From Klebsormidium nitens (taxonomy: Eukaryota > Plantae > Klebsormidiophyceae), in NCBI GenBank assembly GCA_000708835.1, contig DF237379.1, positions 15,213 to 79,212 on the forward strand: a stretch of DNA of 64,000 nt, read 5' to 3'. This document shows, piece after piece, positions 54,131 to 64,000 of the stretch. Position 1 is the stretch's first letter. The number at the start of each line of letters is the position of its first letter. Below the pieces are notes generated by a model. The model did not search any database. It was not told the origin of the DNA and was given only the letters and a program-made list of their open reading frames with translations. The translations under genes were made by a program, and so were the position numbers.

Positions 54131-55028
54131 TTGAAAGAGGAGTGCAGGAAGTTGAAAGAAGAGTGTAGGAAAAGGCGCATTTCAAGAGCAAGCAATGCCG
54201 GCCGACTTTGAGGCTTGTATGGTGCTTATTCCGATTTGTCCTCGACATTTCCTTATGTTGGGTCTTCAAACAAACCCTCAAGGTGCTCTCCCAACATTTT
54301 TCTTTGCTTGTCAGAGCTTTCTATGGGCTGCATAAGGCTCTTCTTTGTGTGCCAGTTTGATGCTCACACACAAGTGTAAAACATAACACTGTCTTTCACT
54401 CCTGTAACACTGACTTACGGCCGAGCAATATTGTCTGAGTACTTGTACCGCCCGAGTAACAGAAACCTGAGTTGCCGTGACGTGAACCGCCGGTATCACT
54501 GACGGAATTCGATACGCGGTATTACAATTTTGTGGCGGTCGGAGTCAAAATTGACTCGGCCGGTACCCACCATAGGTAGCTTGTGGCGTGGAACTTTGGA
54601 AAGTGACTGACGGACCGATAATATATGTAAGGGAATACCGGGTGCAAACGATGCTGCATCATATATTGCCACATGCATCATTAAGTATGGATTACATGGT
54701 GCACTTAATCGCACATTCTCATGTATGTTAAGACAGATTCGACAGCTATCGGCTTTGATCATTCGCAATTGCCCTTGCCCCTTTTGTGCTATTCATCTGA
54801 CGGTGTCACAACAACACTAGACCAACAAAACAATGTACACAAGTGTCCTCCAGCGTGCGCCTCTGAGCGTGCCTCTTTAGTCAACCCTCGAGTCATTTCG
54901 ACACTCTTCCAACATCTAAGCGGATTACCAACTGGAAGTCTATGCGGCTTCATCGACTACCTTAACTCAAAGCTCAAACCTGTTGTCCTACTGACACTTT
55001 CAATCATGCGACAATCTTCACTTCTTGT

Positions 55029-58000
55029 CTATGCCGGACATGCACAGTGCTGGACGCACGCTTCGCAAGCATCCGGGGCGACCATCCGCTTAGAATCAGA
55101 CGGGAGGCGGTTCTGCTCTCGAAGCAGTGCTTGTATATCCTCCGGCAACGCGTCGAACACTTCTTCGACTAACTGGGCGAGATCGTCGAGCGGGTCGTTC
55201 GGGTCTTGGACCTCCGTGGGAGTCTGCTTGACGTGAGACCGGACGAAGCTCATCACCCGCGCTGCAAACAAGAGGCGTGCGAACCGTGAGGACGAGTCAA
55301 GTCGAACACGGATTGCTGGTGGAGTGAGTCCCTCGAACCCTGTTTACTGTTTTGTCAAACAGTCTAGATTTCTGGGCCACAATTGCGAGATCAGTGCATT
55401 CGCTAGACAAGCTTAGCGACTCACTCGTACACTGAACGGTGCTGCTATCAGAAGCCAGCTCTACAACGGTCCGATTGCTGACGTTCTTAATCAGAGTAGT
55501 AGGCAAACGCAAGTCTTTCTCAATCAAACGCGGCGAACAAAGGCGAAAGCCGCAACTTTGGTGCAAATTAGAATCAACTTGAGCCTCACCGCTGTTACGC
55601 AGAATGTAGAGCCATGCGATTCAAACATCTTCCCAAGAGAAAGCTCAACCGCTATGACGAGACGCAAGGGACGTAGATGGAGCAGGGAGAAGGCGACGGT
55701 AAAGGCACACATGGCAGAAGTTTGAGAAGTTGGAGAGCAAAGCTGGGCGGAGACGGAAAGGGAGGGGCAGAAAGTACCGCACGTAACGAGCGGGGGAAGT
55801 CAGGAGAAGCAGCACGCAAGGCGCAGAAGACAGGGAGCAGAGGCCACGTGGTCGATCACGTGGGGGAGGACAGAAAGAGGGGATCCAGGCTAATGAAAGG
55901 CGATGCTGTCAAACAAGAGCACTGGAGTCGGGCCAAACAAGCCTTCACAGTTTCCAGGACTGCACGACTAGAACGGCTTGATGCAAGTAGAAGCAGTAGG
56001 TAAGCGGTGAACATTGAAGAAATACGACAGGGGGGGAACGGATGAGCGTGCTCACCGGGAATCGGCCGGTCAAGCGCCCCCCCGTTGTTGCCCTCCGTTG
56101 GATGTTGCCGCCAGCCGGCAATCTCCACCCCGAGTTGGTTCATGATGACGTAACCCGGCTGCAAAGCGCAGCCAGGTGGGGTTGGTCAGCAGTCATAAGC
56201 ACAAACCTGCGTCGTTCCGCCCATCGAGTAAAGAGGGTTGAGAATCTCCATCCCTGCTTGTTATTATTGACCAATACCAGATGCAGGCCGCCAACGAGAA
56301 AATCTTTGTCAGGTGCCCATTAGAGAGGGCATTTTTCTGCCGCTCAGCTTGTGCGGTCAAGTGCGTATGCATGGAGCGTTGGTATCATGTGTCAGGTTGC
56401 ACTTTGAAGTTGCAGTAGGTTAGTCGGAGGACAACAGGGCAAGCTTTTGTTCTGGCATGAGTGTGCTGCGCTCCCCAAAAACCAAGAGAGCTGGACCCAC
56501 TTCCGGTCGATCAAGAATCTGCTCATGCTGCTCACTGGCACGTACGGTGCCAGTATCCTATGGGTCCTTAGGAAACTCCGATAAGTTACGCGATGCCATC
56601 AGTGATACCAAAGAGACAATCCCCTTATGCGTCTCGACTGCTTTCCAATGTAAATCTCCAGCTTACCCGGCGTACCTAACATTGTCGTCAGTCAGAAGAG
56701 CACCGCCTGCCTCTCAACGATTCGTTCATCAGCATAACGACGCAAGGCCAACACTAACTCCGAGCCCCACCGAGAATCGATCCGGCAGTCTTACCTGGCA
56801 CACCCCGTTGGTGTAAGGCTCGTAGTGGCACTGCGCGCCTGCCCGGATTGCTTCAGTGGTGATTGCAAGACCGTACTCACGCGCCAAAACGTTTTCTGGG
56901 TCGCTCACGATGGTCAAGTGGTCCAGGCCCCAGTTGCTGGCTGAGTGCTCGAGCGACTCCTGGTCCTGGAATAGGCAACAAAGGGTCAGTTTTTGCGTTT
57001 GAGCCGCCAGGGACGGGGGGTTCGGCCCATGTTGTGCCAAAGTCCCTTACATCTGCAAAGCAGATATATAAGTGAAAAAGGTTGAATGTTTTTGGGTTTG
57101 TTGAACAGCTTCAGTGGGTTAGGTCAATAAAGTATCTAGCTACGGGCAGAGTGGTAACCAGTTCAGAAGGGAACCCTTTGGACCGACCTCAACAGAACTT
57201 CATTGAGTAACAGTATCGCTTGTCACGCAACCTGCGACTGGATTACATGCTTCAAGTAGATTGCTATTTAGTATCTGAATCACAAGATCTGCACACCATT
57301 TTGGCATGGCGGTGGGAACTCGCTCCAATGGAGCTGCAGAAAGACCAGACCGCACGGTATCCTGTTAATATCACATATCACGTTGCAAAGTCAGGCCAAC
57401 AATCTCTTATCCGACTGTGTTCGCAGATGGGGCTGCAAATGAGACTCAGCCTTCTGGAGATCTTTGATTGCAACACCCAAGCAACAGCAACTACTGCTTC
57501 ACCAGAGGCCTAGAGGATATTTCAAGCGACATCTTTGAAACAAAAAGCCTGCATTCAGCTGCCTCCCGGGCCACATTTGCAATCAACAGGCTGAATTGCC
57601 GGAGCACTGAAACCACGAGCTTTCTTCTACGAGCTGGCAGGTAAGGCGGGGCATGAGCATGCTGGACTTGGAACGAACAGAAGTGAGGTATGTGTTGCGT
57701 GTAGGAATGTAGCACCACTTGGAGGGTTTATTCCGTAGGATCAGAAGTCAAGCTTGTTGGAAGCGGCTAAGGAAGGCAAGGTCTGACTATTGTGCGCAGG
57801 CGACATGCCCAAAAACCAAAAGATGCTTTCGCTCAGACTGCGGCTGTCTGAAACAAACACTCAAGACTGGTTCTTACAGCATGACTAAGGCCCGCGCCAT
57901 TTACACTCCCATGCAAACCAGGTAACCATGGCTTTGCAGAAATTTCTTACCTGTGCAGTCACTATAAAGAATGTCCCCCCCAAAGCCTCCAAATTTGGCA

Positions 58001-58163
58001 ATTGCTCCCTCCATTGGCTCACATCGTAGCGGCAGAAGGGGCACCAGTCACCTCTCTCCCAAATGAGCCCCGTCAGCGACCGGCTCTTGAATTCATTGGC
58101 CCACCATTCCATGGGGTCCCGGGGCGACAGAATCTCTCTCTTCTTGTCTGCCCTCTCTCCCAT
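55029..58163 (-). CDS. AhpC/TSA-type thioredoxin-fold protein (RGDWCPFC) with a C-terminal UBM-like motif and Cys-rich tail; 4 exons; paralog A
   Basis: Exons 58163-57951, 56965-56795, 56158-56056 and 55261-55029: RGDWCPFC..LEALGGTFFIVTAQ|...IVSDPENVLAREYGL...|PGYVIMN..G.EI..W...GALDRP|...EEVFDALPEDIQALL. Confidence 0.85.
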
Positions 58164-59071
58164 CTTTTACCTTTTTTTATATTTAGATCACACTCTTCTT
58201 CAATTTGCACCTCTTAATATGCCTGATTCCTCGACAGACGTTTCTTTGAAACGTTGCAGGACTTTTGACCTTGATTCGGAGACCTTTGACTTTGATCAGA
58301 TGAAACAAACAGCAACGCCCCTCGGAACGATTTGTATTGGAAAGACCTTACTTTAACACCGTATTCTGCCAAATTTTGGAAGGACCAATGTGGGAAAAGC
58401 TTAATTACTATCAAAGTGCTTGGCGAATTGCCATTCTGTTCCCTCTAGCTAGGCGTAAAACAAATTTCCTCTCTGTGAATAGTGTGTCACCACCCATGCA
58501 AATCCATATGCAGAACTGAATTGAAGCTTGACATTCACTTTCTTACTTTTGTGCTAATCCCACATGTCCATCGGCTCGCACGAAGGGCGCTTTGTACAAC
58601 ACATTTCCCCTCTCACACATGCAAACCAACCCCTGCTAAATCTGCAACAAACTATATGTCGCCACTTTCAGCTCCCAGGGATCTGTGCTCGTCTAGTCTC
58701 TAGACACAACTTCCTTAGGCTTTAGCAACCATATTGAAACTTAGAAGGCTTGCGAAGAAGCAAAACCTGTGCCTCTGGGAACGGGCGTCCTGCCAATCAG
58801 CTTGAAAAGTACTTGGGGTGCTGCCAAAAGTGCTGGCAAAAGTGCTCCCAAAAGCGCTGGCATGCAGGGAACCTTTTCCACTTCGTTGAAGCTTGCCAGC
58901 ACTTGCCAGGAGTAGCTTGGCTTGTGACCCAGTTTGGCACATCGATGGAGCGCATTCACCCAGGGGTTGGGCCCCCGCTCTTGGCCCCTGTTAGCTCTAG
59001 TGTGAACTGACGACCCGCAGGGTTCAGTCACGAGCGATCGGCGATCCGAGATCCGCTCTCCGATACAGCGG

Positions 59072-60260
59072 TTATTCAGAGATTTTGCAGGACCCACCGA
59101 GCGGATCTGAGATCTCGGGGGTCGGGAGTCGGGACTCGGGAGCCAACATTTGCAACACAGTAACTACAGCTGCCACGTGGCGTCTCTCTAGTTCCTTTCC
59201 CTCTCGGGGATCGTAACCGTATGGCATTGATTGAATTGTACGGTCACACGGGTCTGCATAATGCATCAATTTCGAAGTTTCCGGGGACCGGAGGTCCGGA
59301 ACTGCGGGCAGCAGGACTGCACACTGCACAAATGCCACAATGCAGGAGCAACCAGGATTCAGAAATCAGGAATTCAGGATTCAGGATTCAGGAATGCACG
59401 CGGGGGACAATTGTTGTGGGAAGGCAATTGTTGACTTTCATGCGTGATTCCATCCTGCAGCGAAACCTTGGACAGCCTGCAATTTTGCAGCTATCGAAAG
59501 AAACTACCTAAATCTTTGTCTGCTCTCAAATCCATGCATGTTTTTGGAGCTGTGATGCGCCTTGCACTAGTGGTACCCATTGTACCCCTTTCTACCACAA
59601 AAGACTTGGGAAGCTGACAACGTTGGAGTACCTACAAGCACTAGAAATTTCTTGGGCCGGGTAGGCAGAGCTGAAAGGTGAAAGCTACTTCCAAAAGCCA
59701 TTGGCAGAAAGGTGTCTGGTGTCAGAGCAAAAGGTGATTCCAAGCATGTTTTGAAGTCTTACTGGAAGCGGCCCTTCCTGAAGAATCGTCTTTAAGCTCT
59801 GTGGCAAAGCAAATGCAGTGAGCTCAAAGACTGCCTATTGTTGATCCCCAAGGTACCGTAGGTCCACAACTCGAGGAGAGCGAGGGACGTACACAGATTT
59901 TCTGTCCTTCCTGACCAGGGTGTCACATCGAAGATTGTACTACCTTCACTTTTCCTCAAACAAGTGATGCGGCTGATCTGAAACACAGACTTGTGGATAT
60001 CAAAGGAAGGTCCTGCGACCAGCTGCAAGAGGGAGTCAGGCAGCTTCGCTGCACGATAGTAAAGGTCTGACAACCAAACAGCAGGGACATATGCACAGCC
60101 GCAAATGTGATTGAGCTCACATACTCCTGGCCATAGTTGTAACCTTGAGCTTTCGCACGGGCTGTAGAGCCGTGGTTTCCTGAACCTTAGAAGGTTCTGT
60201 CCTGTTTCCTACAGCGCGGATATCAAGGCCCATCAGCAACTCGGTCATCTTGTTTGCCAT
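59072..60260 (-). CDS. Putative uncharacterised multi-exon gene between the two thioredoxin-like paralogs
   Basis: One in-frame path exists: MAR|NLYYRAAKLPDSLLQLV...IFDVTPWSGRTENL|KGRF|HSAYP...|FPDLRSPETSKLMHYADPCDRT...VVTVLQMLAPE. Some donors are weak. The ATG is at 60134 or 60260. Confidence 0.4.
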
Positions 60261-60310
60261 TGCCGGTTTGCGTCGCCTATACAGCCGTCTTTGTTTCGCT
60301 GCTGTTCAAA

Positions 60311-63122
60311 ATGACGATGCCCGAGAAGGTCATCCTGTCTCCAGAAGACCCCCTGGCTTGGCTGCAAAAGCAGATAAGCAGCAGGCCCTTGACGGGCCTC
60401 CTTTTCGAGAAGGGGCCCTGGTGCCCTTGGTGCGTGCACGAAGTCAAGCAGTGGATGGGGCAGCTGCAGCGCTTACAGGGCCTCGGAGGGGCGCTCTTAA
60501 TTGTGACAGCGCAGGTGAGGGCTCCCTTGGCCTTTGAGCCAAAAACAAATGTTCCAAAAGACCTGTGCACTGGTTAAACAATCCCTCCAGGCGGCTGTGT
60601 TGAGGTGTGATTGACAGCATCGATGATGCTTCCCCTGGTCGGTTCCTCATGCGTCCTTGCTGCGCTTGCCGTGAGCCTGAGTTCGTTTCTGTTTGATTGA
60701 TGCTGCCTATTGATGCTGCACTCACTTAGATTGCACAACCCTCAGCTCATTGATCTCAATGTGAGCAGTGCTTCGCGTTGACTCTGCTCCGATTTAGATT
60801 GCTTCAATTGAGGCAAGTGCAATCCGCGTCTTGTGTTTATGGAAAAAAGCTGGTAAGGGAGAGTCCCACCTCTGAAGTTGTGAAAACCATAATGCATTAT
60901 AACACCCATTCTGCAGTCCCAAGAAAAGCTCGTGGACTCTCCAGCGGATTGGGGCCGGCCGGAAGTTCCTGTCATCAGTGACCCAATCAACATCCTGGCC
61001 ACCGAGATGGGGATAGCTGTTGAGAAGAGAGCGATGCTGCCGAGCTTGCAACCCATCTATGAGGCATACAAGGATGGGGTTAACCAGGTGGGTTATTAGT
61101 AGAGCTTGCTGCATCTGGGGCTTAGCAGGTGGATTTTAGTGCGACATGCCCTGTTTGCCTCTTTCATCTGCGCGACCATTGGGGTTGCAGACAAGATTCA
61201 ATTGCTGTACACGCGTGCTGTGCCACCTAAGCTGGCTGATTGATGCCGAGCCGGATCTTGGCAGATGGGCTCGCCCTCCTAACCACTTTCTGATTTGGGA
61301 GCAGGTTAAAGTCTCAACTGCAGGAGTTCAGCTGAAGCTAAGCTGCTAAGAATCATCTGTCATGCAAAGGTTAAGAGTGATTGAATCCAAGTACAGCTTC
61401 TAGCTCTAGAAAGCCAGGTTAAGAAGGAGGCTTAAACCTGGATTTGCAACTCAATGAGTGGAAAGGTTTGCACCCCTAAAAGTTGGGGTACATAAGTATA
61501 ATCAGTGTCACAGCCTGTGATTCCCTTCTCCGCAATCTTCAACGGGTCCCAACAGAATAGTCTCCTCTGAAGTGATCAGAATCTGGATCTGACCAGCTTT
61601 TAATTCTGAGAGCAGACAATTGGCCAGTCAGTTCTTTAATCCTTAGCAATAGGAGTGGTAGCTACTTTGGAGGAGTTACCACAGAGCAGCCAGAAGCAAC
61701 ACTGTGTCCACAGGGGTTGCAGCCATCATGTTTGAACGGGCGGCGTCCGCTTATTGGCTGTCAGATCACGCCCGTATAAGCCTTTCGTTCCCACCTTTGT
61801 ATGAGAACAAAGCTTCTTGGATGCAACATGCTGTGGAGCGAGCATCCAGATTCTGGCCAAAAGGTGCAAGGGGGTGAACTTTCTCGCACCGCTCCGGTGC
61901 AGACCGGTGGGGAATGGGCACCACAGGTGTGGCCTCTTCTTCAAGTGGGGCTTTGTCTTGCTGGATCAGAGCTACACCATAAAGCAACGATCAGCAAATA
62001 CCTTCTGACTTTAAACCACAAGTAGGAGTCTACCTGTGAGTTGTAGCTCAAGCACTTTTCCGTCCAGGTGGGCTTCGTCTTCTTCAACCAGAGCGGGGAG
62101 GAAGTCGTCGGCTGGGGAGCAACCCCCACCGAGAACAACCTGGGGGGGTCGTTAGATAGACCTGTGCCAGGTGAGGGGCCCCCCCAGCATGTGTGCGCAA
62201 TGTGGGTAACGCTCAGAACGCTACGTAGTGAAGCAGCATGTTAGAAGCGGACTTTGATAGTCATTCAGCTCGGGGAGGGGGTCGCATAAGCAGGAACTCT
62301 GGACAACCCGTGACCATAAGCCGGCGACTTGAAGCCGGCCTGTATTCGGAGCAGTCGGCCACAAGTACACATGTAGGATCGCTGGTGGAACTTGACCGTT
62401 TTGACCGACTTTCGTGCGTCTAAGAAACGATTCAGGAAAGAGGACACGGAAGGCTTAGGTTGGGCGCCAATCCTCCAAATGGTTTGTCTAACTTGCTGGG
62501 AAACCTGCTGGCGGGCGAGACAAGTCCGTGTGACAGACGTTCGAAGCCGCTTATTCCTCGTCGCTCTGACTTAGTTCTGCGCTCCAGGAATCGTCTAGCG
62601 ACATCCCTTTACAAAGGAGTGCTCACATCCGCTTTGCAGAGCGGTCAGGCAATGGCACAGGTCTTTGTTCCATCTCAAAAAAACAAAACGGGACAAGTCT
62701 TTGTTCCACAGAAAACAAACCCTCAGAATAAAATTTGACTTTTTTGTTTCTGGGGAGCTGAGCAGACAGCACCTTGGAAAAGCCCCGAGCAGCAGCACAA
62801 TTACGACACTAGCTCCTGTCAAACTGACACGTGTCACGCTCTCCTTGCAGCCCAAGTCATGGACTTCTTGGAGCGAAAGCTCCTGCAGCCCCGGCCGCAG
62901 CCCCGGGGTCACGACCTCAACAACAAGGTCAAGCTAACCATCCAAGTCAAAGCGAAACCCATTGTCGAAGAAGCGGAACCCGATTTCGCGGCGATCGAGC
63001 TCGACGATTACGCCCAGGTGGTGGAGGACGTTTTCGACGCTCTGCCGCAAGACCTGCAGGCGCTGGTCCTGAAAGAGAAGCGGCTCCCACAAAGTTCGAG
63101 AAGGTTAACGGCGGAGATGTGA
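60311..63122 (+). CDS. AhpC/TSA-type thioredoxin-fold protein (KGPWCPWC) with a C-terminal UBM-like motif; 4 exons; paralog B
   Basis: Exons 60311-60514, 60917-61087, 62068-62170 and 62851-63122 have the same intron positions and phases as paralog A: KGPWCPWC..LQGLGGALLIVTAQ|...VISDPINILA.EMG|VGFVFFN..GEEV..W...GSLDRP|...EDVFDALPQDLQALV. Confidence 0.85.
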
Positions 63123-64000
63123 GGAGAGCTTTTACGTGCTTAAACTTGAAAGGCCGAAAAGGCCTAGGCACTTGTTTCGAAGCCGCCAGCATCTGTGCTG
63201 GTTCCAAGCAGCTGTCAGATGAGATGGGTACGGACAGATACTTGCTGCGGCAATCGACGGAGAGTAGAATTTCAGCAGTATCATACTATTACGTTGTCTA
63301 GCTTTCCATAGGGTTTGAAGTGCATAGCATGAGGGAAAGTACATGCTCGCGACGACGCTACTAGTTGTTAAAATGTACAGCGGCTGATGAAACTAACCAG
63401 ACAACGTGAAGTGCGTCAAAAGTCGAGTTCAGCGTCAAAGACGGTCCGCTTTCATCTCAAAGGAGACCCAAAGGACGTTGATTACGGTCGACCAGGTTTG
63501 CGAGTATAAAAAGACACGTTTCTGTAGCAACCCTTGTTCTGACACGTCGCAGTCTGAATAAAGTCAGATTTCGCGTGCTGAAAAGTGATCTATCATTTAC
63601 CCAAGCATCTGCTGAAGTTAAGCACCTGTAATGTAAGATTCCTTGTATGAGAATAAGACCGCGGGTTCATTCGACAAGATTGGATATTCGAGGCTTGAGT
63701 CTCTCGAGTCCTGGCAGCTCTTTGTCAGTGCGGCGGCGCGAGCCTCTACATATACCAGCCATCCGACCATTTTTACATTGCAACATGCTCGTTTTGTGCA
63801 CGACGACTGGCCGCCTACAGTATAGTATACTGTCGTGATGCTACGGGTCGTGTCGATAATACCTCGGATCCTATGATGATGCGCAAACGATACGCTCGAA
63901 ATGAAAACTATCGTGTCGAATCCTAGCAATCCATCCTAACATGCTCGTGTAGTCGTAGTCATGCAGAAAACGTAGTAACCCATGGCACTCCAAGGTTGGA

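Follow-up and report, generated by a model that had tools for sequence, protein, structure and literature searches.

The window analyzed here is a 64,000-nucleotide stretch of the Klebsormidium nitens genome (assembly GCA_000708835.1, contig DF237379.1, positions 15,213 to 79,212 of the forward strand), and coordinates refer to it unless another sequence is named. Within it lies a head-to-head pair of paralogous genes, which we designate paralog A (58163-55029, minus strand) and paralog B (60311-63122, plus strand). Each is read from the DNA as four exons and encodes a CxxC redox core followed by a C-terminal tail that carries a short conserved block (Table 1). An earlier note, made from the letters of this DNA, had described the pair and its WCPFC and WCPWC centers and had proposed that the tail block is a ubiquitin-binding motif (UBM). 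The inverted four-exon pair and both intact centers were confirmed when the DNA was read. As set out below, the tail block evolves under the same constraint as the redox core, and it may be a UBM-like docking hairpin that directs these enzymes to ubiquitin.

The two gene models agree closely. All six introns have GT..AG borders, the intron phases are 0, 0 and 1 in both genes, exons 2 (171 nt) and 3 (103 nt) have the same lengths in A and B, and the codon split by intron 3 encodes Ala in both. The product of paralog A, at 239 amino acids, matches in every letter the K. nitens database protein KFL_004300120 (P0001 in our set), and the reading frame of paralog B comprises 249 codons. Protein identity between A and B is 50, 40, 56 and 48% for exons 1 to 4, respectively, and within the exon 4 tail the block LDDxAQxVExVFDALPxDxQAL...RLP is the best conserved part. 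Because no inverted DNA repeat joins the two genes within 54500-63700 and protein identity amounts to just 40-56% per exon, the duplication is old; the same observations rule out a recent inverted duplication or gene conversion.

Transcript evidence came from the assembled contigs of four runs, drawn from four studies, placed on positions 58001-64000 of the window. The contigs show GT..AG splicing; thus the four runs, whose RNA origin was otherwise a guess, derive from mRNA. The paralog B joints 60514|60917, 61087|62068 and 62170|62851 are present in contigs of all four runs, and a single contig (X13, record 2) covers all four exons, so the last exon is indeed joined in RNA to the exons that encode the CxxC core, as the earlier note had supposed. 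Exon 4 continues for ca. 480 nt beyond the stop codon without a joint, which establishes that the stop is real and that a fifth exon is absent. For paralog A, the placed contigs comprise exon 1 and its leader, with coverage from 58001 to 58876-58921; their total lengths of 1673-1735 nt would fit the four-exon model plus a 3' untranslated region (UTR) of ca. 250 nt.

Table 1. Features of the paralog A and paralog B genes (positions in the 64,000-nt window)
Feature	Position	Strand	Basis or content
Paralog A exon 1, coding part	57951..58163	-	71 codons, ATG at 58163; P0001 residues 1-71
Paralog A WCPFC	58046-58032	-	exon 1
Paralog A exon 2	56795..56965	-	57 codons, phase 0 on both sides
Paralog A exon 3	56056..56158	-	34 codons + 1 nt; holds the subfamily signature NNGGALDRPIP
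Paralog A exon 4	55029..55261	-	last core helix, linker, conserved tail block, stop codon
Paralog A conserved tail block LDDLAQLVEEVFDALPEDIQALLREQNRL	55104..55190	-	P0001 residues 187-215
Paralog A Cys-rich C-terminus CEACVQHCACPA	55032..55067	-	DNA read
Gap between A and B transcripts, presumed bidirectional promoter	58922..59376	.	contig ends 58876-58921 (A) and 59377-59386 (B)
Paralog B transcript	59380..63600	+	RNA contigs: 931-nt leader, four exons, ~480-nt 3' UTR
Paralog B exon 1, coding part	60311..60514	+	68 codons
Paralog B WCPWC	60419-60433	+	exon 1
Paralog B exon 2	60917..61087	+	57 codons
Paralog B exon 3	62068..62170	+	34 codons + 1 nt
Paralog B exon 4, coding part	62851..63122	+	last core helix, B-type-specific insert, tail block, stop
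Paralog B conserved tail block LDDYAQVVEDVFDALPQDLQALVLKEKRL	63000..63086	+	tail alignment, predicted structure
Paralog B stop codon	63120-63122	+	no contig joint downstream of exon 4

To characterize the core, full-length protein analyses were made with P0001 and with a third K. nitens paralog, KFL_003570060 (P0071), and paralog B and the orthologs from other samples were searched and aligned exon by exon. P0001 matches the Pfam family AhpC-TSA (PF00578) with 32.2 bits, above the 26-bit cut-off; single exons on their own scored below the threshold. The AlphaFold model of full-length paralog A (predicted local distance difference test, pLDDT, of 82) gave 446 Foldseek matches in the PDB at E<=0.001, led by peroxiredoxins at E 5e-6. 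VIA comparison aligned it with Prx3/BcpB over 139 residues (Z 13.2, root-mean-square deviation [rmsd] 2.8) and also with human PRXL2B/PGFS (9us9; Z 12.4). The NCBIfam model SelL_rel_redox (NF040769) matches weakly, at 25.3 bits, below its cut-off of 120 bits. The AhpC/TSA-like assignment of the core made previously therefore holds on both family and fold comparisons.

The active sites read ...IWERGDWCPFC... in A and ...FEKGPWCPWC... in B, and a CxxC occupies the peroxidatic position in every paralog and ortholog (WCPFC, WCPWC, WCVLC and WCTLC). The peroxidatic signature PxxxT/SxxC is absent from A and B, in which neither cysteine has a Thr or Ser at -3 or a Pro at -7. The core is thus a peroxiredoxin-fold domain of the PRX-like2/SelL-like kind, with a thioredoxin-style CxxC in place of the peroxidatic PxxxTxxC. 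Because the W-C-P-F/W-C active site lacks the Pro and Thr of the peroxidatic signature, the core most likely acts as a thiol-disulfide oxidoreductase rather than as a classical peroxidase. No signal or transit peptide is predicted for these proteins, and so they are probably cytosolic. PRX-like2/SelL-related proteins, including human PRXL2B/PGFS, likewise combine the peroxiredoxin fold with CxxC for TxxC; the Klebsormidium proteins stand apart from them as members of a separate subfamily, recognizable by SDPxNxLA, YPxG(M)xQP and NxGGAxDRPxP, and through the Leu-Pro hairpin of the tail, which is restricted to the Klebsormidium members.

The family has at least three paralogs and was found here only in Klebsormidium-type DNA. 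A search of the whole library with an exon 1 profile returned four close clusters, namely P0001 and three exon 1 fragments from other samples, below which scores fall steeply to distant homologs. The contigs that hold these fragments, one from a Logan assembly (L001) and two from a single JGI metagenome (L002 and L003), have all four exons with the same phases; they are the A-, C- and B-type orthologs, respectively. The third K. nitens paralog has a WCVLC center and the same tail block. Its gene (L004 4001-6732, DF237306.1) carries an extra phase-2 GT..AG intron of ca. 400 nt, inside the Trp codon directly before CVLC, which is found in neither A nor B nor the C-type ortholog L002. Three further tail open reading frames came from a word search that used the tail profile. 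The tail set used below comprises nine sequences of three paralog types: A, B, P0071 and six tails from other samples.

Distant core homologs occur in protists (Gymnochlora, Pharyngomonas and Rhizamoeba) and in bacteria and have SDPxNxLA, YPxGxxQP and NxGGAxDRPxP in common with the Klebsormidium proteins; the Leu-Pro hairpin tail is absent from all that were examined. Three other arrangements of the PRX-like subfamily are seen among the distant homologs P0006, P0007 and P0013: in Gymnochlora it occurs as a tandem duplication, in Pharyngomonas it is fused to an RGS domain, and in a metagenome-assembled genome of the Myxococcota a protein named "(seleno)protein" has the PRX-like part after a YHS-type N-terminal region.

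The tail block, a helix-Leu-Pro-helix of ca. 30 residues, recurs in the third paralog and in six further tails, which is more than chance. In the alignment of nine tails, a linker Pro, L-D, V-F, L-P and the Leu six residues past that Pro are invariant, position +8 is Ile, Leu or Phe, and position +9 is Gln, with Arg in one sequence. We estimated the ratio of nonsynonymous to synonymous substitution rates (dN/dS, Nei-Gojobori) from ortholog pairs and obtained 0.13-0.23 for the tail block and 0.135-0.21 for the core, as against 0.41 to above 1 for the tail outside the block. These values show purifying selection on the block as strong as that on the core and bear out the earlier description of a short conserved block within otherwise divergent tails. 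Because its dN/dS is as low as that of the core, the block is a functional element and not a linker.

Structure prediction gave similar pictures of the block in A and B. In the AlphaFold model of full-length A, a helix spans residues 190-200, followed by the Leu-Pro turn and a second helix at 203-214, with a pLDDT of ca. 78-80 in the tail. The B tail modeled on its own has a helix at residues 51-63, a turn at L64-P65 and a helix at 66-74 (pLDDT 81-87), the remainder being disordered. A Foldseek search of the PDB with the isolated tail model returned no match, a result that is uninformative for a hairpin of ca. 25 residues. The tails vary around the block. The B-type insert (62886-62999, plus strand; also in exon 4 of L003) combines a conserved Pro/Arg stretch, PRPQPR, with an acidic run and with KxKLT(I/V)x(V/I)K, whose alternation is strand-like, and it is kept between samples yet predicted to be disordered (pLDDT below 50). 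The C-type ortholog ends in ...SEICV. The Cys-rich end of paralog A, CEACVQHCACPA, which had been offered as a possible metal or redox tail, is partly kept in the A-type ortholog (L001 4327-4542), where the shorter ACEPCACPA retains the first Cys and the final CACPA, but the B and C types lack it.

UBMs have been described in REV1, DNA polymerase iota (Pol iota) and HUWE1-type ligases. Like the tail block, they are helix-turn-helix elements of ca. 30 residues built around an invariant Leu-Pro, and their V-F-x-x-L-P-x-x-(I/L/V)-Q pattern recurs in the tails. The residues by which UBM2 of REV1 and of Pol iota contacts ubiquitin are V, F, L, P, L/V at +8 and E at +11 (PMC8468184). Across the nine tails the first four of these residues never vary and +8 is Ile, Leu or Phe, so that five of the six contact positions are kept, whereas the sixth, +11, is Leu in place of Glu.

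Profile and single-sequence searches against 177,635 PDB sequences repeatedly retrieved UBMs. A profile of six tails gave nine matches at E<=10, six of them to UBM1 or UBM2 of Pol iota or UBM2 of REV1 and three to BAG1; with the profile of all nine tails, UBMs made up 6 of 13 matches. For the profile of the four B-type tails, the top three matches were REV1 UBM2 constructs (E 0.015-0.025), aligned without gaps over 39 columns that reach into the N-terminal flank of the motif; the consensus has 11 identical and 5 similar residues at 26 ungapped positions of REV1 UBM2. The tail of the C-type ortholog on its own had Pol iota UBM2 as its top match (E 0.065), and VFYELPE of Pol iota UBM2 is identical in a C-type tail. 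Matches to Pol iota UBM1 and UBM2 ranged from E 0.065 to 0.8. A feature search with a language model (Atlas) using the B tail placed UBM clusters in its top three ranks, with scores of 0.77-0.79 that lie below the trust level and serve as a lead only.

Several results weigh against a UBM. At +11, where UBMs have the Glu that forms a salt bridge with Arg42 of ubiquitin, the tails have an invariant Leu; Glu stands at +10 in four of the nine, and an alternative HMMER alignment has, instead of a Leu at +11, a deletion of one residue following the Gln. The Asp-Pro with which canonical UBMs start is replaced, and helix 1 is longer than that of a UBM and carries an extra invariant L-D-D. The Pfam UBM model (PF14377), a check proposed together with the original idea, went against it: eight of the nine tails had no match (A, B, C, B' and C' none at E<=10), exon 4 of A and of B was blank both whole and as 35-residue pieces, and the A-type ortholog tail, for which UBM is the best family, reached 13.4 bits (E 0.054) against a cut-off of 23.3. 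Although UBMs dominate the PDB match lists, all of these matches have E values of 0.015-1 and none falls below 0.01. The feature search gave no usable match with the C-type tail. The ubiquitin-like domain of BAG1 scores as well as or better than the UBMs, and therefore the pattern is not unique to them. The architecture also differs, the tails being single-copy at the C-terminus of a redox enzyme, whereas UBMs stand in tandem in the polymerases REV1 and Pol iota and in the HECT ligase HUWE1, which has three repeats (PMC8476073).

The last point against a UBM concerns the face that would bind ubiquitin. In an Atlas shape search, residues 27-214 of the A model superposed on a 181-amino acid cyanobacterial redoxin over 179 columns (rmsd 2.9). 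From the tail-core contacts inferred from this superposition, the hairpin may be docked on the core, in the place where distant homologs have C-terminal helices of their own, which would bury the putative ubiquitin face. This docking is not independent evidence, however, because the MAFFT alignment behind the model put both extensions in the same columns.

The UBM proposal thus stands in part: REV1 and Pol iota UBMs come up repeatedly in the PDB searches, five contact residues are kept and a helix-Leu-Pro-helix is predicted, but the Pfam cut-off is missed and the contact Glu is lacking. The whole explanation that we favor, a CxxC reductase family with a ubiquitin-directed, UBM-like docking hairpin, has in our estimate a probability of roughly 0.4. 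In these proteins the last core helix is followed by a variable linker and then by the helix-Leu-Pro-helix hairpin. With its V-F-x-x-L-P-x-x-(I/L) ridge, the hairpin would bind to the Leu8/Ile44 surface that ubiquitin, or else a ubiquitin-like protein, presents, and in this way the reductase would be held at ubiquitylated clients or at components of the ubiquitin system. That the tail binds ubiquitin or a ubiquitin-like protein at all is plausible, at somewhat less than even odds. The narrower claim, that a divergent single-copy UBM lets the Klebsormidium CxxC peroxiredoxin-fold reductases recognize ubiquitin marks directly, is more doubtful, and we put it forward tentatively.

Among other explanations, the one that survives best is that the hairpin is a structural or partner-docking element of this PRX-like subfamily, be it an intramolecular lid, an oligomer interface or a site for a partner other than ubiquitin, and that its likeness to UBMs is convergent. 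We regard this as a serious contender that falls a little below an even chance. It would account for a constraint on the block equal to that on the core, for hydrophobic conservation in helix 1 that exceeds the UBM core and comes with the invariant LDD, and for the failure of the Pfam UBM test. The confidence of the tail in the full-length model (pLDDT ca. 78-80) and the superposition of the A model on the cyanobacterial redoxin up to residue 214 point the same way, as does a helix-turn-helix extension after DRPxP in the distant homologs P0006, P0007, P0008, P0011 and P0045. However, hhalign gave a probability of 0.4% for the Klebsormidium tails against these distant extensions, and the docking in the model may simply follow from the placement of the extensions under the tail by MAFFT. 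Moreover, AlphaFold predicts the same hairpin at equal or higher confidence when the core is left out, the B-type linker accommodates an insert of ca. 25 residues, and the repeated and specific retrieval of UBMs from the PDB sequences would be unexpected for an arbitrary hairpin. Homology of the tail to the C-terminal extension of the distant homologs is rejected on the same hhalign result.

An improbable alternative derives the tail from a ubiquitin-like (beta-grasp) domain that was formerly attached to the enzyme and has left a remnant, of which the B types would keep strands 1 and 2, helix 1 and strands 3-4, and the A and C types helix 1 and strands 3-4 only. The BAG1 ubiquitin-like domain (1wxv, 9heu) is the top PDB match of the all-tail profiles (E 0.003-0.007 over 37-41 columns; ca. 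20 bits, over helix 1 and strands 3-4) and also matches B alone, and a ubiquitin variant matches A weakly. In addition, LPxDxQxL(L/I)xxxx(R/K)L falls in register with IPPDQQRLIFAGKQL of ubiquitin, the block can likewise be placed in register with helix 1 of ubiquitin, and the B-type tails have the conserved, alternating strand-like KVKLTIQVK. Set against this, the PDB contains many ubiquitin-like domains and yet BAG1 is the sole one matched, the Pfam ubiquitin family gives no match, and strands 1 and 2 are lacking in the A and C types. The tails are predicted to be helical, AlphaFold giving no strand and a pLDDT below 50 for the B insert, and the proteins stop short of strand 5, with no further exon in the RNA. 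A true five-stranded ubiquitin-like domain is excluded by the missing strand 5, the lack of a further exon and the absence of predicted strands. A fifth exon that would complete such a domain is ruled out by the ca. 480 nt that run unspliced past the stop and by the ortholog ends, which differ and are unconserved.

Finally, the acidic-V-F-x-x-L core could be read as an ATG8-interacting motif (AIM, or LC3-interacting region, LIR) linking the enzyme to autophagy receptors. All nine tails invariably have F-x-x-L after acidic residues, in keeping with the AIM/LIR rule [W/F/Y]-x-x-[L/I/V]. This reading is nevertheless very improbable: that pattern is very frequent by chance, an AIM takes an extended-strand form on binding and belongs to a disordered region while the tail motif lies in a confidently predicted helix, and neither the invariant Pro nor the conservation of the second helix would be explained.

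If the UBM-like hairpin is what it resembles, it would be the first UBM in a protein that is neither a translesion polymerase nor a HECT ligase and would link thiol redox repair and the ubiquitin system directly and physically in an early-diverging streptophyte. A full-text literature search found no paper connecting UBMs with thioredoxin-like proteins or peroxiredoxins. In concept, the nearest parallel is TXNL1/Txl1, a thioredoxin-like protein tethered to the 26S proteasome, in which a C-terminal module without catalytic function recruits a CxxC reductase to the ubiquitin-proteasome system; that module is a PITH/DUF1000 domain with affinity for the proteasome lid, the redox domain is a classical thioredoxin domain, and there is no sequence relationship to the Klebsormidium proteins. 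Ubiquitin binding by the tail would provide a simple, testable case in which a redox enzyme is guided by ubiquitin marks and would widen the sequence definition of the UBM to include a Leu at +11 and a long first helix. If the tail does not bind, it would serve as a warning that a short helix-Leu-Pro-helix can mimic a UBM so closely that pattern matching and language-model features are both misled.

Whichever explanation of the tail holds, the locus contributes paralog B, a transcribed gene without an annotated protein in the search made. Full-length A, used as the query, recovered just itself and the third paralog, and no annotated paralog B protein in the range of 131-418 amino acids; paralog B may therefore be missing or mis-modeled in the public K. 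nitens annotation. Paralog B contigs have their 5' ends at 59377-59386 and their 3' ends at 63579-63627, and in the contigs of the four runs transcript depth is zero at 59001-59200. With ca. 460 bp between their 5' ends, A and B presumably share a bidirectional promoter, and the two genes are co-expressed. Both leaders are very long, ca. 737 nt for A (58164-58900, minus strand) and ca. 931 nt for B (59380-60310, plus strand), and each contains about ten upstream ATGs and short upstream open reading frames, which may point to control of translation or else to introns within the leaders that the contigs do not resolve. Contigs of low depth (4-11, against 45-120 on the exons) cover paralog B introns 2 and 3 (61063-62093 and 62141-62877) in some of the runs, consistent with pre-mRNA or intron retention.

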